Below, piece after piece: positions 1 through 64,000 of a stretch of 64,000 nucleotides of DNA. Within the stretch, counting starts at the first letter, position 1. Each line of letters opens with the position of its first letter. The notes under the pieces are model-generated. The model was not told where the DNA came from, did not search any database, and saw only the letters and a list, made by a program, of their open reading frames with translations. Origin of the DNA: Selaginella moellendorffii (taxonomy: Eukaryota > Plantae > Lycopodiophyta). Made by a program: the position numbers and the translations under genes. The DNA lies in NCBI RefSeq assembly GCF_000143415.4, contig NW_003314407.1:239748-303747 (forward strand). The letters are read 5' to 3'.

Positions 1-850
1 GTCTAGCACAAGGATATAGCATAATTTTAGCATACCAATAGCCTAACATAAGGATTCCACCAACTAGTATGGTATGGTTGGGCAAAGTGTTGTATAGTTA
101 GTATATTAGTTTATAGTGTTCATAGCTTTATGAGGTTAAGCTAGGCCTTAGCTACTACAAATCTATGGCTGAAGACATAAATTAGAAGTATAGACTAATT
201 GATTGATTAATCAATCATATGCACACTCCACCTCATTTGTGTTTATTAATGTTTAACATCTGTAAAAGTGTAATAGAATTTGTGTCAGGAATAGGATCTT
301 TCTATGCATTCGAGAGTGTGAAGTAAAGCAACTTGAGACTTGCAACATCCCATGCTAGCACCTAAAGTTAAAGTTCTATAATATGAGACTTCTAATGTTG
401 TTTTTCTTGGCATGTGGAAACCCCCTTATACACCATCTAGGGTTGCAACATTTAACACTCGGGTTCTTATGGTTCTTATAGCTGGCTAGGGAAATCTAAT
501 TGCCCCAAATGGTCTGTGAGTGACTAAGAGAGAGAGTTGTGTCTTTTCTTGGTTGGGTCCCTTGCCTAAGGCTTTTATAGGTTGTGTTGACATCTCATGT
601 AAACAAGTTTAATGTTCAAGGGCTGATAAAGCCTTGATTGACACTTCCACAATTTGAGCTATCAAGCTGGTGACACATGCACCAATCAAGACAAGTTTGA
701 CTATTCACCCTTTACTTAGGTATCACAAGCCACCCATGATGTGGGAACAAGTGGTATCTTTCACAACAAAATGTTGGTGTACTTTGTATTTGTACTTAAT
801 TCCTAGTCATCCACTTGAAAATAAATTAGCTACTGCATTACAAGACAAAT
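1..850 (-). mobile_element. Possible LTR-retrotransposon LTR remnant (window edge)
   Basis: Non-coding. The minus strand has a TATA box (CTATAAAAG, ~573-581) followed by a CT-rich leader, resembling LTR U3/R. No second LTR, PBS or TSD is visible. Confidence 0.25.
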
Positions 851-1066
851 AAAAGATTCAAACTAAAACAAAAATCCATCTGGCTTGGAATGTCTTTCAT
901 AAATTATCTTGAACCTTAGAGACAAAAAAAATATCTATAAGTTTACATTTTAAAAAATCTTTATTTTATTATTTTAACTTATTCTAAATTTTATATAAAT
1001 AAATTTTTATATATCTATAAGGTTAAAAACAGTTTTAATTTTATTTCTTTGCTATTACTATTTGCA

Positions 1067-1954
1067 ATGAGAATAGCATTAAATATTTTCATTTTACTAC
1101 TTTTATTTAAAGTTTCTAAACAAATTGAATATCAGACTGGAGTATTTGATGCTATAAGTGAAAATGTTGTACATGCTATTATAGGAGCTATTAGAAATTC
1201 AATTAATAATATACCAAATAGTATAATTCCATTAAGACAAAGTGTACATGGAGAAGTAGATGTTCAACATCCAGATAGAACTCATACATATGTTGGATTT
1301 GGTATTTTTGTATTAGAAACAATTAGAGAATTTTGTACTATAAATTCCGAAGGAGGTGTAGAATTAGGAGTTAACATAAGAAATTCACTAAATCACATTT
1401 TAGAAGAGTCTTCTGATGAGATGCTCAATTTTGCTGCCTCATTTATTATTATAAACACTGAGCATTTTTTAATTTATTATTTTGTTAGAAATTTTAATAA
1501 TCAACAACACAGAAGACAACAGATTTTAGTAAGACATTCTCAATGCTATTTGTTTTCAAGCTTTTTAATAAGTGGTTCTATCAATATGCTGCATCAATAT
1601 CTATTACCTTCACAATTTTTAATTTCTTCAAATCATAAAGCACATTTATATTTAAGCTCTGATTGTAACTTAATAGTATATATGGGTATAAAAACATTAT
1701 GGTCTTCAAATACTTCAAAAAAAGGAACAAACTGTATTCTAAGATTGCAAGAGGATGGAAATTTAGTTTTATATTCTTATGATAGTAAACCTGTTTGGAC
1801 AACAAATACTTATTGCACTTCTTATAATTGTTATAAAGCTACATATTTAGTTATACAAAATGATTGTAATTTGGTTTTATATATTGGATACCAAAAAACA
1901 TTTAGCACTAACCCTAAATTATATTCTGAATGGGATTCAAAATCTTTTTGCTAA
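1067..1954 (+). CDS. Secreted protein: signal peptide + unknown ~130-aa domain + GNA/bulb-type mannose-binding lectin domain
   Basis: Intronless ORF from ATG 1067 (MRIALNIFILLLLF). C-terminal QxDxNxVxY motifs QEDGNLVLY and QNDCNLVLY plus degenerate SSDCNLIVY. Paralog at 60413-61324. Confidence 0.85.
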   Translation: MRIALNIFILLLLFKVSKQIEYQTGVFDAISENVVHAIIGAIRNSINNIPNSIIPLRQSVHGEVDVQHPDRTHTYVGFGIFVLETIREFCTINSEGGVELGVNIRNSLNHILEESSDEMLNFAASFIIINTEHFLIYYFVRNFNNQQHRRQQILVRHSQCYLFSSFLISGSINMLHQYLLPSQFLISSNHKAHLYLSSDCNLIVYMGIKTLWSSNTSKKGTNCILRLQEDGNLVLYSYDSKPVWTTNTYCTSYNCYKATYLVIQNDCNLVLYIGYQKTFSTNPKLYSEWDSKSFC

Positions 1955-1955
1955 T

Positions 1956-2499
1956 ACATATTTTCTTTATACTTACCATTTCTGTTTCTTATATTAGATA
2001 TGTAAATTTATTAATAAAATAGTTAATCATGTTCTAATATCTTATTAAATTGTTTCTTTCATCACTGTCTTGTCTTTTAATAAGGAGAAGGTTTTAATTT
2101 TAATCATAATTACAATTTAAAATTTTCTACCTTGTTTTTATAAGTATTTAAATTTCTATATTATTAAAATTTCCAACTTGGTAGCAATTGCCTAAAAAGC
2201 ACCGCTCATGAGCAAACGATCGATGATATCAACATATTTTCTTTATACTTACCATTTCTGTTTCTTATATTATATATGTAAATTTATTAATAAAATAGTT
2301 AATCATGTTCTAATATCTTATTAAATTGTTTCTTTCATCACTGTCTTGTCTTTTAATAAGGAGAATTTTAATCATAATTACAATTTAAAATTTTCTACCT
2401 TGTTTTTATAAGTATTTAAATTTCTATATTATTAAAATTTCCAACTTGGTAGCAATTGCCTAAAAAGCACCGCTCATGAGCAAACGATCGATGATATCA
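1956..2499. repeat. Two-copy tandem repeat (1956-2231, 2232-2499)
   Basis: Near-identical units from ACATATTTTCTTTATACTTACC to GATCGATGATATCA, with one ~8-bp indel. Confidence 0.95.
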
Positions 2500-4245
2500 T
2501 CTCTCGAGCTTGCTCATCATCGAATCTAGCACAGGAAGCTCCTTGACAAGCTCTTGCCATTCAGGCATTCCCTGTAGCAGCACCCAAATCACTTTTGCTC
2601 TCTAGCCAACTAGATTAAGAAGATTTGCTTACCCGACCCGATTTGCGGATTCTCCCATCGAGCCGGAGCACAATGAAAACCTCTTCGCCACCGGTTACTC
2701 CTTCCGACTCTTGCTGCTCAAAGATCCACCTGATTGTCGTTTCCACACTCTAAACGCTCAAACAAGGTAGAAACAAGATACTCACCTCTCCCATTCTGCT
2801 TGAGAAACCACCTCCGCTACAAATCGCTTCTCACTCTCGAGCACTGCCTTCAGTGCCGCGTCCTGCGCTCGTTTTTGAAAATCATCCTGAATCACGAGAG
2901 AAAAGGGAAATTTAGGAACCACGGATTGGATAAGCTTACGCTGCCGGAGCCAGCTGCTGGAGCTTTTACGGAGCGTCCAAATCCTTTCTTCTTAGGCGTC
3001 TCGTCCTTTTTCCTCCACTCGACCGGAATCAAGAGCACGCCTCGTTGCAGGAGATCTTTGCGGTATCTCTCCGCCTTCTCCAAAGCTCCCTTGATCGACT
3101 CTTTGGTACCGGCCAATATCACCTTTCGCTCCAAGAGAACATACAAGCAAGCTTGGTTTGATATTGGAAAGAAAAAACTTCTTACCGGTCGTGTGATCCC
3201 TCGAAGTTGCACCACCTCCACGATGCGTCCAGTTCCGAGCCGGACAGGAAGCCTTGACAAAGTCTCGTTTCTTGTGATTTGAGACATTTGCGTCTCTTCT
3301 TTCTTGCTGTCCCAGATAAACAAGGACACAAAAGCCACTATACCTGTGAAAAAGCGCAACCTTGATTAGATGAAAACACACTCTCATCACATTTACCTGC
3401 GAGGTCTATTGCCAGATTCTGTGCGGTCTCCGTGACGCTTGGAGCGTCCTCTCCCCCCTGCAGTGCACGAATGAGCCTCGGGACCGTGATGAAAGTCGCG
3501 ATCCCAGCGGCAATCGTGAATGCGACGTAGAAAAACTTGCGAACGCCACGAAACGGTGCCTGGACTTCGCTGATGAGCTTTAAGTCTCTTCGGAAGCTGC
3601 TTCCAGTGTCTTCGCCACCTTTCCGAGCCTGTCCAGTGCACGGCAAAGCTCATCACTTCGGGCCAAGCAAAGATTGAGAGAGAGAGATTGGCTCAACCTC
3701 GTCCTGGAGAGCCTTGAACTCTGGAGACGCTCGGAAGGGAGCAAGGTCCGGATCATTGAGGATGACATGAAACTTGACGTTGTAATCACGCAGCGCTGTT
3801 TGCAATGCCTGTGCTGCTTTCGCGGGCTCTTCCCTGGAAACAAATGGTCACGAAAGGAGAGAAGAAACGAAAGAGTCGAAGAAAGCACGAAACCTTGAAG
3901 CATGGCAGCAAGCTTTGTTGTAGTACGCGGCCTGCGCCTCATCGAAGTTTGGATTCATGGCCAGGGCGGTATCAAACTGATGCAATGCGTCCTTCACCTG
4001 CCTAGTGAGAACAAACCAACACGTATGGAATCATCCACATCCATGGAGCTTCGCTAAAGTACCCTTCCTTTGGAGAAGAGTGACAAGCCCAGATTGACGG
4101 CGTCGGTTGCTGTTTTCACCTGTGATTCGCTTCCATCCTTGGCAGCGCGCACCCTGATCGCGATCTTGGCGCGCCCAAATGCGAGGCGACGAGGGGCGGC
4201 ACCACACCTGAGCGACACGCACCCGGAAAAACACAAGACATCCAT
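2497..4245 (-). CDS. LPA1: LOW PSII ACCUMULATION 1, chloroplast TPR/DUF3493 PSII assembly factor (multi-exon)
   Basis: Exons encode a transit peptide, VNLGLSLFSKGRV, FRRDLKLISEVQAPFRGVRKFFY, ITRNETLSRLPVRL and C-terminal MSKLER* (TGA at 2497-2499). These match remembered Arabidopsis LPA1. Confidence 0.9.
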
Positions 4246-4418
4246 CTCTCACTCTCTCTCACACACACACGCACACACACCAAAAGAAACCCTTTTATCT
4301 TTTTTTTGTGACCTCTACGAGGATCTTAGCTCGCGAGACATCGATCGTTCTTTACCTTTAGATAGAACCACACTTTCTTTACCCTTTGCTCGAATCCATT
4401 TCCAGAGATAGCAGAGTA

Positions 4419-5474
4419 ATGGCGTCCTCTCTCGTTGCAACCAGGTCGCTCCTTCTCCCGCATCAATCTTCCTCCTCTACTCGAAGAAATGGCGGCCACA
4501 TTGTAGTTTGCTCTTGCTCCTCCATGGAAGACTTCACCAGAAAAGCAGGCAAGCTCGCATTCGCTACAGTGGCGGCCACAGTCCTCCTGGCCGGGGTAAG
4601 CTCCTCGCCATAGACCATCTTTCACCTCCTCCTTCGACACAGCATTTGCCCGGTGTGGGCATTTGTGAGTTCTCTTATAGATCTTGTGTCCCTTGTCTGG
4701 CTTTGATAGGCAGCAGATGCCCGGCCGCGCCCTCGCTTCGGATCCAGCGACGAGGAGATCCGCGAATACCTGGACAAAACCCCCAGCTACGACGATCAAA
4801 TGATGCGAGCCTATCTGGACGTCAAAGGTAAGTGGACAGGAACCAAATGCCCGAGCCCCGTCACCAGCGGTGCCACCGACGGTTTCAAACTGGAACCCGG
4901 TGACTACTACGTGACCAACATGTGTTTGCAGCCAACCTCATACCAAGTCACCCGGAAGGCCGGGATTGGCGAGTTTGACATCTCGACAACGTACGAGACG
5001 AAGCTGCTTGCGAGGGTGGACGGGATCGAGGGCTCCCTGGCCGTGGCTCCAGACGGTGGTGTCAAGTTCGAGGAGAAGAAAGGGCTCAACACGGACACCA
5101 CCATCGCCAAAGTCATCGCTAGGCTTCCCGGGAAACAGGAGCTAGTGCCCTTCATGTTTGGGATCCAAGACCTGGTTGCGTCGGGTAGGCCGGAATCTTT
5201 CGGTGGCCAGTTTATAGTTCCCACAGCGACGATCCAACCGAAGAAACTGGACGTGGATGAGACCGAGCCGCTGGAGAGCACCACCACGGAGGGCAGCATT
5301 GTGTTCAAGGTGACGAGGAGCAACTTGGAAGCCAAGGAGCTGGGTGGCGAGTTCGAAACCAGCCAGCTCTCGGGCCTGGATCTACGGTCCAGATCCAACG
5401 CGGGCTTCCTCATTGGAAACAAGGAGAAGAAGAGGGTCAAGGTATCGGGCGTGTGGTATGCAAAGCTCGATTGA
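4419..5474 (+). CDS. Divergent PsbO-like (OEE1-like) thylakoid lumen protein; exons 4419-4595 and 4710-5474
   Basis: Bipartite transit peptide ending LLAG|AADA. Motifs YLDVKG..KCP, MCLQPTSY, VPFMFGIQDLVA, VSGVWYAKLD. Intron at the same position as in the neighbouring PsbO, and the spliced frame is intact. Confidence 0.85.
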
Positions 5475-5580
5475 TTGCTAAGAGATAACTCTGATAGAAA
5501 GAATGTAAAGAAAAACAGTACCATGGATTGGATATCTCAATCAAACAAAGCTAGATATCATATCCTTTGGCTTTGAAAGA

Positions 5581-5645
5581 GCCAGGTGGCGCGTGCTCAT
5601 TGGCTGCTCGAGCTTGTGGCGGCAAACCTCTTATCCATATATCCG
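5581..5645 (+). promoter_or_regulatory. Light-responsive-type promoter motifs upstream of PsbO
   Basis: G-box-like GCCAGGTGGC (5581-5590), reverse CCAAT (ATTGG, ~5599) and reverse I-box CTTATCC (5630-5636), 80-135 bp before the ATG. Confidence 0.4.
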
Positions 5646-5715
5646 CGCTATCCAAGAGCCCTAAACGCTCTGTTTAGCCCTAAAACAGAGCAGTGCGCGA
5701 GATCCAAGCAGCGCA

Positions 5716-6801
5716 ATGGCGGCATCGGTGGTAGCAGCCAAGGCCGGGCCATCGCTCCTCCAGCCCAAGCTCGATGCCTCTGCAGGATCGTCCGCCAGCC
5801 TCCGCCCGGTGTCGGTGTCCAAGGCATTTGGATTGCGCAGCAATGGAGGAGGAGCGCGCCTCACTTGCTCCATGGAGGACATTGTCAAGAGGGCCACGGA
5901 TGTGGGCAAGGTCGCCGTTGCCACTGCCGCAGCCACATTGCTCGTCGCGGGGGTAAGCGAAAGATCTCCTCTGCTGGACGGATGAATTGAGAGAATTGGA
6001 GCAAGTCTGGTAGTCATTCTCATGAATTTCCCCTGTTTTGTGATGCTCTAGACCGCCGCCGCGAATCCAAAGCGCCTCACATACGACGAGGTCCAAGCCC
6101 AGACGTATCTCGAGGTGAAAGGCAGCGGCACCGCCAACCAGTGCCCGATCCTGTCCGGTGGCGACGAAGGATTCAAGTTCAAGCCCGGCAGCTACAGCGT
6201 CAAGAAGTTTTGCCTCGAGCCCACGTCCTTCACCGTGAAGAAGGAGTCGCCATTCAAGGGTGGCGGCGATCAATACGTCGACACCAAGCTCATGACGAGG
6301 CTGACATACACGCTGGACGAGATCGAGGCCGACTTGAGCGTGGACGAGAAGGGAAACCTCAAGCTGGTGGAGAAGGATGGCATCGACTACGCTGCGGTTA
6401 CCGTCCAGCTCCCCGGAGGCGAGCGAGTTCCATTCCTCTTCACCATCAAGGAGCTCGTAGCGACTGGCTCCCCGGATGGATTCAGTGGAAGCTTTCTGGT
6501 GCCGTCTTACAGGGGCTCCTCGTTTCTAGACCCCAAGGGACGCGGTGGATCCACCGGGTATGACAATGCGGTGGCGTTGCCGGCCGGAGGCGCTGGTGAC
6601 GAGGAGGAGCTCGGCAAGGAGAACCTCAAAGATACCTCGGGGTCGACTGGGAACATCACCTTGAAGGTGGCGGAGAGTAACACCGCCACTGGAGAGATTG
6701 CCGGGGTATTTGAGAGCATCCAGCCCTCGGACACGGATCTGGGATCGAAGGCTCCCAAGGAAGTGAAGATCCAAGGTATATGGTACGCGCAACTTGACTA
6801 A
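5716..6801 (+). CDS. psbO: Oxygen-evolving enhancer protein 1 (33 kDa); exons 5716-5952 and 6052-6801
   Basis: Canonical motifs [68 protein letters not shown]. Confidence 0.97.
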
Positions 6802-60412: not shown

Positions 60413-61324
60413 TTAAAACAAGCAAACTTTTTTGGAAGCCCACATTTCGTATATCCATGGTTTAATATGGAATTGCTTTTGATAACTTGCAAATAAAATT
60501 AAATTACAATCATTTTGAAGTATTAGATATGAATTTACAAAACAATTTTTAGTTTTACAATTTGTACCTGATGCCCATAAAGATTTTTCATTCTTTTCAT
60601 ATAAAACTAGATTACCATCTTCCTGGAGCCTCAACTTACAATTTGTACCTCTATTTGCAGTTTTAGTAGACCATAATATAAGATTTTTGTAATATAATAT
60701 TAAATTACAAATGCTATTGAGATATAAATGTGCTTTTCCATTTGGGGAAACTAAAAAAAAATTTGCTGACAAATACTGATGTGGCATATTGATATAGCCA
60801 CTTATTAATGTACTAAGAAAAATATTACATTTAATCATGTTACCAACTGAAGTTAGTAATTCAGGTCTACGAGGAATATAGTTTCTTATCATATATTGAA
60901 AAGCATAATGTTCAGTTATAACAGTAACATAAGAAGCAGCAACATTTACTATTTGACCATAAGCTTCTTCCAAAAGTGCACCTAAGTCACCTCTTATAAC
61001 AGATCCAGGATCAGTACCACCAGCTGCATTCATTGCACATTTTGCAAATGATCGTTCAACTCTGCTATAAATCCAAAGACTAATAGAAATAGTTGTACTA
61101 GTTCCATCGTCATGTTCAAGTACAGCTGTACCATCTTGTCTTTGACCTCTTGGATAATTATCATTGGTTATGACAGCAATCATTCCTCCAATACCATTTA
61201 AAATCGCACGAACAGAGTCGTCATCTAATGCATTTAACTCACCATAATCAATTTGATAAGAGGATTGTACTTGTGAAAAAAAACTAGATAATAAAAATAA
61301 ATTAAAAAAATAAATAAAATTCAT
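60413..61324 (-). CDS. Secreted unknown-domain + GNA lectin protein (paralog of 1067-1954)
   Basis: Signal peptide MNFIYFFNLFLLSSFFSQVQS, LQEDGNLVLY, LQNDCNLILF. The N-terminal domain aligns with the first copy. Confidence 0.85.
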   Translation of the reverse strand: MNFIYFFNLFLLSSFFSQVQSSYQIDYGELNALDDDSVRAILNGIGGMIAVITNDNYPRGQRQDGTAVLEHDDGTSTTISISLWIYSRVERSFAKCAMNAAGGTDPGSVIRGDLGALLEEAYGQIVNVAASYVTVITEHYAFQYMIRNYIPRRPELLTSVGNMIKCNIFLSTLISGYINMPHQYLSANFFLVSPNGKAHLYLNSICNLILYYKNLILWSTKTANRGTNCKLRLQEDGNLVLYEKNEKSLWASGTNCKTKNCFVNSYLILQNDCNLILFASYQKQFHIKPWIYEMWASKKVCLF

Positions 61325-61818: not shown

Positions 61819-63714
61819 ATGCCCGTGAAATGGCGCGACGAAGAAACGCTCCATTACCTCTCGCGAGCCGTGAGATCTTGTGGGATCAATCGGGACCTCG
61901 CGGAGGGCAAGCGCATCCACGCAAGAATTCTCGAAGGAAGCCACAGCAAAAACAGGTATCTCACCAATCTCCTCATCGAGATGTATGGGAAATGTGGCAG
62001 CCTCGAAGACGCACAATCGGTGCTCGACTCCATCGACAACCCAAATCGCTTCTCCTACACGCTCATGATCCAGGCGTATGCCCACAGCGGCCACGCCCGG
62101 TTCATGCGCCAGGCGCGATTCTTGCTGGATCGAATGCCTGAGGCCGACGCTGTCGCAGCCAACATCATGATCAAGGGATACATACGACTGGGCGATCTTT
62201 GCAGCGCCCAAGAGATCTTTGACCGGATGGATCACAAGACGCTGGCAACCTCGAGCCTCATGATCGCGGCATATGCCCAATGTGGGCATCTCTACGAATC
62301 CTGGAACTTGTTCTTACGAATGGAAAGCCGGGACTTTCTTATCTGGACGGCACTTGTGACTGCGTGTGCTGATATTGGTAAACTCGACGAAGCTCTTCGA
62401 GTGCTTCATCAGATGCCCAAGTGGGATGTTGTCCCGTGGACTGTTGTTCTTACAGCATTTGCCCGGTTTGGGCATTATGATTCTGCTAGAAGACTATTTG
62501 ATAGTATGCCGTACACAGATAGGATCTCTCAAAATGCAATGCTCAATGTGTATGGACAAGATAATAGGACTCACGAATTGAAACAGCTCTTCCACAACAT
62601 GCCCGAGCGGGATATCATAAGCTGGACTTCTATGATGGCCGCAAATGCTACACAAGGTAATGTGGGCGATGCGCGAGGCTTGTTTGACAGGATCCCGCAG
62701 CGGAACACTGTGGCATGGAACACCATGATCCAGGCTTACGCCGAGAAGAAAAACCTCCATGAGGCTCTCTCGATGTTCATGGCGATGGAGCAGCCGGATG
62801 TCATCTCCTGGACGCACCTTATTGCTGCCTTCTCTGAAAATGGATTCCTTGATCAAGCCAAGTTCATGTTTGACAGGATCCCTCTGCGAGATATGGTCTC
62901 TTTCAATGGAATGCTTGCGGCTCTCCTCAAGAACGATCGTCTTGACGATGCCAAGGCAATGTTTAATGAGATCCCGGAGAGAAACCTGGCATCCTGGAAT
63001 CTCTTGATCGGTGGGTTCTCGGACCGAGGAGAGCTTGACGCCGTGAAGCATTCGCTGGAGATAATCCCGCAGCGAGACTTCATATCGTGGAACTCATTGG
63101 TGGCAGTCTATGTCCAAGCTCATCAGCTCGACCAAGCAAAAGCCGCTTTTGACGAGCTTCCCCAGCGAGATTGGTCGTCATGGAATCTCTTAGTCTCGGG
63201 TTACGCTCAAACAGGAAAACTCCAAACAGCGGCACAATGGTTCGGTCGAATGCCGCAGTGGAACGTTGTCTCATGGAACGCTCTCATCGCCGGCCATGCC
63301 AAGCATGGCGTCGAGTCGATTGCATTGAATCTCCTCTCGAGCATGAGCCTGGAAGGAGTAATACCAGACTCAACCACATTTAGCAGCGTTTTGGCCGTCT
63401 ACAGCCACAAAGGGATGCTGGCCGCCTGCCGAGAAATCTTTGGACTCATGGTCCGAGACCACTGGATCGATCCGAGCTTACAGCAGTTTTGCGGCGTGGT
63501 GGACGCCTTGGGCCGGAGTGGCAAGCTGAGCGAGGCTGAGGAGCTTGCGTCTGCCATGCCTTATTTGCCAAACCGTGCGGTATGCAATGCACTACTCGGT
63601 GCGTGTAACATCCATAGCGACGTGACTCGCGGTGGTAGAATGGCAAGCTGCGCAGTGGATGTGGCTCCAAGCTCAGGTACCTCCTACGTGCTCTTGTCCA
63701 ATATGTCCTCTTGA
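61819..63714 (+). CDS. PLS-class PPR protein with a run of ~31-aa short motifs and E domain, no DYW
   Basis: NLLIEMYGKCGSLEDA, repeated FDRIPQRN.V.WN units, VVDALGRSGKLSEAEEL, ALLGACNIH, SYVLLSNM*. Confidence 0.92.
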   Translation: MPVKWRDEETLHYLSRAVRSCGINRDLAEGKRIHARILEGSHSKNRYLTNLLIEMYGKCGSLEDAQSVLDSIDNPNRFSYTLMIQAYAHSGHARFMRQARFLLDRMPEADAVAANIMIKGYIRLGDLCSAQEIFDRMDHKTLATSSLMIAAYAQCGHLYESWNLFLRMESRDFLIWTALVTACADIGKLDEALRVLHQMPKWDVVPWTVVLTAFARFGHYDSARRLFDSMPYTDRISQNAMLNVYGQDNRTHELKQLFHNMPERDIISWTSMMAANATQGNVGDARGLFDRIPQRNTVAWNTMIQAYAEKKNLHEALSMFMAMEQPDVISWTHLIAAFSENGFLDQAKFMFDRIPLRDMVSFNGMLAALLKNDRLDDAKAMFNEIPERNLASWNLLIGGFSDRGELDAVKHSLEIIPQRDFISWNSLVAVYVQAHQLDQAKAAFDELPQRDWSSWNLLVSGYAQTGKLQTAAQWFGRMPQWNVVSWNALIAGHAKHGVESIALNLLSSMSLEGVIPDSTTFSSVLAVYSHKGMLAACREIFGLMVRDHWIDPSLQQFCGVVDALGRSGKLSEAEELASAMPYLPNRAVCNALLGACNIHSDVTRGGRMASCAVDVAPSSGTSYVLLSNMSS

Positions 63715-64000
63715 TGATAATTTAAAAATGTTTCTGTATTATTCTTGAATTCTTAGGCTACTATATATTAGCCCAGTGAAATTATAAAAGGAGAGAAAAA
63801 AGATACTGGAAGAATTAATAACATATAAAAGTAAAGACATATTTTAGTATTTTGAAGGCTGATAGTTTAAATTGACTTACGCTATTTTTCAATGTGGCAA
63901 TTACAAGTAATATTAAAGATTTAACAAAATGATTTTGAATCCCATGCAGGTTTGAATTTGGGATTACTACTAAATGTTTTTTGATATGCATAATATAAAC

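Follow-up and report, generated by a model that had tools for sequence, protein, structure and literature searches.

According to Vaattovaara et al. (PMC6368629), the DUF26 domains of the PDLP proteins, ginkbilobin-2 (Gnk2) and the fungal lectins Y3 and LDL form a single fold group, built of two helices on a central antiparallel sheet, whose members have been proposed to bind carbohydrates. The same paper defines DUF26 by six cysteines that include a C-X8-C-X2-C motif, and describes Gnk2 as a mannose binder with antifungal activity (PMC6368629). Plant chimerolectins, in which a lectin is joined to an unrelated domain, provide another point of reference. The parts of the overview by Van Holle and Van Damme (PMC6362431) drawn upon here ascribe lineage-specific chimerolectin architectures to early land plants, and they name glycosyl hydrolase, EGF-like, peptidase M11 and S-locus/PAN/kinase domains as partners of GNA domains. 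A fusion of a DUF26-like domain to a GNA domain goes unmentioned in the passages of PMC6368629 and PMC6362431 drawn upon here. Further comparison is invited by the monomeric antifungal gastrodianins, by type-2 RIPs and other AB lectin toxins, and by the lectin-like bacteriocins.

The window analyzed in this work, by which we mean the whole stretch of 64,000 nucleotides from Selaginella moellendorffii, carries several copies of a gene whose product resembles the chimerolectins (Van Holle and Van Damme, PMC6362431) in joining a lectin to an unrelated domain. Two of these copies, here called A and B, had been read in the original prediction as members of an AB-toxin-like secreted family, and both open reading frames are present where that prediction placed them. 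The features of the locus, with the evidence for each in brackets, are the following.

1067-1954, plus strand: gene A, an intronless coding sequence of 295 aa and stop, with the order signal peptide, orphan N-domain, RR linker, GNA lectin domain (open reading frame)
1067-1120, plus strand: predicted signal peptide of A, residues 1-18, MRIALNIFILLLLFKVSK (assigned by reading the sequence)
1121-1501, plus strand: N-domain of A, residues 19-145, with a single Cys at residue 90 (AlphaFold2 model, pLDDT 50-76, and fold matches)
1502-1552, plus strand: linker of A, residues 146-162, with Arg149-Arg150 at 1511-1516 and Cys160 (RR and Cys conserved in A, B and the paralogue C)
1553-1951, plus strand: GNA (bulb-type, beta-prism II) lectin domain of A (Pfam, PDB sequence matches and fold)
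800-2400, no strand: AT-rich island around gene A, GC 0.20-0.28 (200-bp GC profile and dinucleotide table)
60413-61324, minus strand: gene B, an intronless coding sequence of 303 aa and stop, with the domain order of A (open reading frame, Pfam B_lectin at 38.6 bits, PDB sequence matches)
63921-64000, minus strand: a further family copy, of which only the C-terminal end (25 aa and stop) is present, running off the window end (tblastn)

The products of A and B align end to end with 42% identity (E 2e-76) and share, as had been claimed, a predicted signal peptide and an N-domain of ~130 residues. The putative signal peptides show a short charged start, a hydrophobic run of 12-15 residues and a small or polar stretch, in that order. 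Every motif named in the prediction can be located in both proteins, namely QIEY in A and QIDY in B, IRNSLNHILEE and IRGDLGALLEE, and AASFIIINTEH and AASYVTVITEH, together with the aligned N-domain cysteine (EFCTIN and AKCAMN), the dibasic linker (HRRQQIL and PRRPELL) and the cysteine that follows it (SQC and IKC). The copy cut by the window end is 72% identical to residues 271-295 of A (E 2.6e-07 by tblastn), with a DNA identity of 81%. Outside the window, an intact, full-length paralogue of 295 aa (C; L002:3449-4336 of Selaginella moellendorffii GL377704.1) is 67% identical to A. Paralogue C retains AASFIIINTEH, the N-domain cysteine (NLCTIN), the Arg-Arg pair (HHRRQQ) and the linker cysteine (NKC), but has HFDY in the place of QI[ED]Y and IIND in the place of LEE, so that these last two motifs do not extend to the whole family. 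Across A, B and C, the eight cysteines of the mature protein all align. The published assembly also holds a syntenic counterpart of the gene A locus (L001, GL377689.1), with a DNA identity of 96% and the same TPR/DUF3493 and PsbO neighbours. The family spans at least four loci. Two NCBI entries of the same species resemble the lectin half of A, SELMODRAFT_7677 with 91% identity and SELMODRAFT_8086 with 77%, and the DNA around them leads to L001 and L002. The NCBI gene models at both loci annotate just 77-90 aa of the lectin part, which would account for the absence of the N-domain from protein databases. What emerges is a multi-copy, lineage-restricted and cysteine-rich family, putatively secreted to judge from its N-termini, and in these respects the prediction is supported. 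It is also a family new to description: a chimeric, defence-type and largely unannotated group of lectins in spikemoss.

The C-terminal half of these proteins is a plant-type GNA domain of the beta-prism II fold, in which the canonical cysteine pair is kept and one or two mannose motifs are intact. The Pfam family B_lectin (PF01453) is matched by A with 42.2 bits and by B with 38.6 bits, above its cut-off of 32.4, and residues 160-295 of the AlphaFold model of A form a beta-prism II (pLDDT mostly 74-90, falling to 53-64 in places) that scores Z 15.6 against 4tkc, 15.5 against 1xd5 and 13.4 against the GNA structure 1msa. Both lines of evidence bear out the genuine GNA domain that had been proposed. 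In the PDB, the lectin half of A is closest in sequence to two plant lectins of the GNA type, gastrodianin (69 bits) and SCAfet (68 bits), and both cysteines of the canonical pair (DCNL...NCIL) are matched by cysteines of gastrodianin-4. Of its three QxDxNxVxY motifs, A has two intact, the first having lost its Gln and become degenerate (LSSDCNLIVY) and the second (LQEDGNLVLY) and third (IQNDCNLVLY) being preserved; C shows the same pattern, and B keeps the second motif intact and the third nearly so (QNDCNLILF), having lost the first. The mannose sites of the prediction are present in part, and sugar may be bound through them. The closest likeness is to the monomeric gastrodianins (GAFP, 1xd5/1xd6), with which the lectin half shares the 69-bit match, the Z of 15.5, the canonical pair and two QxDxNxVxY motifs. 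Unlike gastrodianins, however, the Selaginella proteins carry a 145-residue N-terminal extension of a different fold, a degenerate first sugar site and four extra conserved cysteines, located in a C-x4-C between subdomains II and III, in the third motif and at the C-terminus.

GNA-type domains also occur in the killing proteins known as lectin-like bacteriocins (LlpA/putidacin L1, pyocin L1), which match the lectin half with 46-59 bits and Z 10.5-11, but these are bacterial proteins made of tandem GNA domains, with no other module and without the plant cysteine pair. A word-based protein search with the lectin domain of B returned one bacterial lectin as its sole match. A bacterial origin of the lectin half was nonetheless rejected, since the plant cysteine pair is present in it and the best bacterial match lacks that pair. 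A viral origin was likewise discarded, because the viral GNA matches (27-46% identity) cover only residues from ~150 onward and are no closer than plant lectins. Four contigs labelled as giant-virus bins in IMG/VR (L012, L017, L023 and L052) encode GNA-type domains with 34-46% identity to the lectin half over ~90-110 residues. The N-domain is absent from all four, and the viral contigs as a whole hold generic GNA domains only. With a plant-type lectin half and nothing but generic GNA domains in viral contigs, there is nothing to support a foreign origin.

The N-domain is a sequence orphan, as had been anticipated. Relatives were sought among proteins with a word-indexed search of 5.8 billion clusters, which found none, and with an exhaustive profile search of 1.84 billion representative proteins, whose single match was a spurious repeat protein aligned in seven stretches and which thus yielded no genuine relative. 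For the N-domains of A and B, no Pfam family was reported at E<=10, PF01657 included, a PDB profile search at E<=10 returned no match, and feature searches of the ESM Atlas gave no usable one. Together with the viral contigs, these searches uphold the claim that the domain is not assignable by sequence to a known family. Searches by sequence likewise gave no RIP, enzyme or toxin family, and no recognisable catalytic motif was seen in the domain. The DUF26-defining C-X8-C-X2-C motif is absent as well, with one cysteine per N-domain in A, B and C.

Predicted structure points to a possible resemblance at the level of the fold. The AlphaFold model of A was computed from an eight-row alignment of four family sequences and four GNA domains, with a mean pLDDT of 59.5, and it lays out the N-domain as a helix (32-47), a hairpin (59-82), a second helix (100-122) and a second hairpin (126-141) at pLDDT 50-76, followed by a segment, residues 141-177, which includes the linker and falls under 40. 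Other predictions were less confident, with ESMFold placing the N-domain under pLDDT 50 and AlphaFold giving 32 for B from its single sequence. The structural comparison was run on the whole model, N-domain and lectin half together. In an exhaustive scan of 48,161 representative chains, nine GNA-type chains rank first, and the next ranks, which fall on model residues 24-149, are taken by the DUF26 of PDLP8 (Z 6.9), Gnk2 with mannose (6.3), Coprinus Y3 (6.3) and the DUF26 of PDLP5 (6.2). Further down come one tRNA-synthetase domain (Z 5.3) and then the Lyophyllum lectin LDL (Z 4.5). The alignments to PDLP8, Gnk2, Y3, PDLP5 and LDL, which head the list for the N-domain and all lie on model residues 24-149, span 82-99 residues in sequence order. 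When the best 1000 chains from Foldseek were re-aligned, PDLP5 (Z 8.2 over 95 residues, rmsd 3.1), PDLP8, Y3 and ginkbilobin-2 were the sole N-domain matches to exceed a background of ~4.5. The Z of the N-domain to Gnk2 is 6.1-6.3, and about 90% of the target domain is aligned for Gnk2 and for the DUF26-A of PDLP5. Atlas and Foldseek fold searches of the PDB with the whole model returned lists filled with GNA lectins and were uninformative on the N-domain.

We therefore give the N-domain a little better than an even chance of having a fold of the DUF26/Gnk2/fungal-lectin type, on the evidence of the model. The weak points of this reading are a moderate model derived from four family sequences, Z values of 6-8, a range in which perhaps only a common arrangement is shared, and the lack of both the DUF26 motif and PF01657. 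The single cysteine and the missing PF01657 signal imply a fold-level resemblance to DUF26 and not membership. In their putative secretion and in the predicted order of elements of the N-domain, the Selaginella proteins are like Gnk2, the single-DUF26 CRRSPs and the fungal lectins Y3 and LDL; they depart from Gnk2 and DUF26 in a sequence identity of just 7-11%, in having one cysteine instead of six, in the absence of PF01657 and in the fusion to a GNA domain. The N-module may thus be described, by inference from the model, as having the two-helices-on-antiparallel-sheet fold of DUF26/Gnk2, Y3 and LDL minus their disulfide scaffold.

The two halves also differ in how they evolve, the N-domain changing at two to three times the rate of the lectin half. 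Overall dN/dS is 0.36 between A and its L001 counterpart, 0.52 between A and C, and 0.51-0.59 between either of these and B; by part, it amounts to 0.69-0.85 in the N-domain and 0.25-0.39 in the GNA domain. The prediction had the family diversifying, and of the two domains it is the N-domain that evolves faster, as would suit a variable head for recognition or an effector role, carried on a sugar-binding base that is conserved. In sequence of 26-29% GC, chance would place a stop every ~12 codons, and a frame of ~300 codons would stay open with a probability of ~1e-12, so that the open reading frames are not accidental. Since they remain open with dN/dS of 0.36-0.59, selection has kept the genes intact. 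Synonymous divergence (dS) among the three full-length frames is 0.35-1.2. Paralogue similarity ends no more than 10-20 bp outside the coding sequence, and no shared transposon flanks or terminal repeats were found around the copies. The L001 counterpart of A presents a 1-bp deletion and a substitution cluster just past the signal peptide (L001:3400-3480, matching 1067-1130 of the window), with a frameshift as a result; past the break, the frame stays open for 279 codons with 94% identity to A, and only this part entered the alignments. The frameshift may reflect a null allele or else a fault in the assembly.

The linker between the two modules is the most divergent segment of the protein. Its Arg-Arg pair is conserved across the three paralogues, with a cysteine on each side. 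Processing into two disulfide-linked chains is therefore possible, given this conservation, the poor prediction of the linker and the flanking cysteines. A complex prediction of the N-domain with the GNA domain scored 0.00, in a run that left the alignment unused and in which the partner fold was uncertain, and it weighs on neither side of the question.

Base composition sets the family apart from its genomic surroundings. Gene A has a GC content of 0.259, a GC3 of 0.122 and a single CpG, and gene B has values of 0.294 and 0.148 for GC and GC3. Across A, B and C, GC is 0.25-0.29, GC3 0.12-0.15 and CpG o/e 0.07-0.36, as opposed to 0.53, 0.61 and 0.94 in the neighbouring PPR gene. The AT islands are 1-1.6 kb long and have sharp edges, GC rising to 0.4-0.5 at ~2400 in the case of gene A. 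Gene B and the cut copy, both on the minus strand, flank the PPR gene in question, an intronless, GC-normal gene of 631 aa on the plus strand (61819-63714), and hence the lectin genes are interleaved with ordinary genes and do not form a single large island. Compared with L001 over 800-4260 of the window, the island around A shows 3.8% substitutions and many indels, as against 1.0% in the adjoining TPR/DUF3493 gene. Recent substitutions from AT to GC number 16 and those from GC to AT 7, counts that are too few and too parsimony-biased to separate amelioration from equilibrium. The 3' flank of A consists of a 276-bp tandem duplication (1956-2231 and 2232-2499, 96.7% alike), which is found likewise in L001. 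A post-stop hairpin in the style of giant viruses was considered and dismissed, the palindrome behind C (L002:4336-4382, directly after the stop) being a mere (TA)n microsatellite and A and B having none.

Gene A is silent in the RNA data. None of the sampled words of the gene is present in 16 Selaginella moellendorffii transcriptome assemblies, and three deep RNA-seq runs of ~1.4 billion letters each place zero reads on positions 1-2400. In the same runs, the gene at 2400-4200 is covered at a depth of 3-14, the PsbO paralogue beyond it at 2-20 and the gene that follows at 75-800. Expression of gene A is thus probably limited to tissues outside those sampled or to induction. The same reads illuminate the neighbouring genes. 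RNA joints confirm nine introns of just 53-69 nt in the TPR/DUF3493 gene (2400-4200, minus strand), with alternative joints near 3992-4115, and many sites of this gene carry two alleles, each in about half of the reads, which indicates that the sequenced plant is heterozygous there. Two tandem PsbO (MSP) genes follow at 4419-6000; the first, at depth 2-20, has a 114-nt GT..AG intron (4595-4708), and in the second, at depth 75-800, molecule ends pile up at 5679-5680.

The explanation we favour, tentatively and at somewhat less than even odds, is that these are spikemoss-specific, secreted, disulfide-rich defence lectins of two modules, which would act by bivalent binding rather than through an enzymatic A-chain. 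Judged by the example of Gnk2, gastrodianin and GNA, the protein would be exported and its GNA domain would bind mannose-type glycans on fungi or other attackers, while the variable N-module might offer a second surface for the recognition of glycans or other targets. Two recognition surfaces would lead to action by bivalent binding or cross-linking and not through an enzymatic A-chain, and the Arg-Arg of the flexible linker may serve subtilases or kexin-type proteases as a point of cleavage into two chains. The original prediction went further, proposing an AB-toxin-like defence protein in which the N-domain is a new cytotoxic effector, cut free at Arg-Arg, tethered by Cys90-Cys160 and delivered into cells after mannose binding. 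Much of its scaffolding stands: the predicted signal peptide, the Arg-Arg in a disordered linker, the flanking cysteines conserved in three paralogues, the GNA lectin and an orphan N-domain that is the faster-evolving part. The order of signal peptide, non-lectin domain, basic linker and lectin domain, with cysteines on both sides of the linker, is also that of type-2 RIPs and AB lectin toxins; but a RIP A-chain is twice as large as the N-domain, which has no RIP or enzyme match, the lectin is of the GNA type and not ricin-B, and cleavage and disulfide are putative. It is the toxin A-chain itself that fails to appear. For the N-domain within the whole model, no RIP or toxin fold is found among the best 50 matches of the 48,161-chain scan, and no enzyme or toxin fold exceeds the background of ~4.5 among the best 1000 Foldseek chains; the matches that do exceed it have folds that bind carbohydrates, a catalytic motif is not recognisable, and Cys90-Cys160 is just one of several possible pairings among Cys 90, 160, 250 and 255. 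The prediction had held that a match to a known non-toxic domain would refute it, and the resemblance to DUF26, Gnk2, Y3 and LDL comes close to being one; Gnk2 itself is antifungal. The AB-toxin reading is borne out only in part, and we consider delivery of a toxin unlikely.

Many GNA-type lectins are made as precursors that are then cut. The N-domain might accordingly be a large pro-domain (a folding helper, an inhibitor or a sorting signal), removed at Arg-Arg to leave an ordinary GNA lectin of ~135 aa. The position of the pair in a flexible linker right before the lectin domain would suit this, and so would the weak constraint on the N-domain (dN/dS 0.7-0.85), to be expected where only folding and removal are needed; yet a part of 130 residues, for which a compact fold is predicted and in which the AAS....TEH, Y..RN and GG..G..IR elements are invariant, is large for a pro-peptide, and the conserved N-domain cysteine suggests a place in the mature disulfide network, which makes this reading very doubtful. 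The composition of the genes and the silence of gene A raise the prospect that they are relics instead, methylated, transcriptionally dead and decaying copies without present function, possibly from an AT-rich mobile or viral donor. Gene A has zero RNA reads beside expressed neighbours and its words are absent from the 16 assemblies, GC3 is 0.12-0.15 and CpG o/e as low as 0.07, the L001 counterpart is frameshifted, the island has diverged about four times as much as the next gene, and the genes are intronless within sharp compositional edges. Against this, three full-length frames have stayed open despite a dS of 0.35-1.2, at a chance of ~1e-12 each, dN/dS is below 1 even for A and its frameshifted counterpart (0.36), eight cysteines and two sugar motifs are retained, the copies lack shared flanks or terminal repeats, and viral contigs carry generic GNA domains, never the N-domain, the GNA half being of plant type. 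Present-day functionlessness is hence improbable in our estimation. A bolder proposal, which we advance as speculation with little probability, would make of the family a previously unseen plant defence class, a DUF26/Gnk2-fold offshoot without its cysteines, fused to a GNA lectin; its genes would sit in very small, hypermutable AT islands free of CpG, a normally silent, fast-evolving compartment for secreted proteins that would parallel in a plant the AT-rich isochores where some fungi keep their effectors.

The whole architecture and its ~130-aa sequence-orphan domain are missing from lectin and DUF26 surveys, and the annotation of this model lycophyte contains fragments of 77-90 aa. A survey like that of the chimerolectins could not have detected the architecture, given an N-domain devoid of any InterPro signature and genes annotated as fragments only. 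Base composition, with GC3 of 0.12-0.15 beside 0.61, almost no CpG and a four-fold higher allelic divergence, constitutes a separate puzzle, one of local mutation or silencing in a plant genome. If the model is right, the family would provide a natural two-headed mannose-binding protein for trial against fungi. And if a Gnk2-type fold can indeed stand without disulfides, the spikemoss proteins would bear on the origin of DUF26 in land plants and on its relation to fungal lectins.
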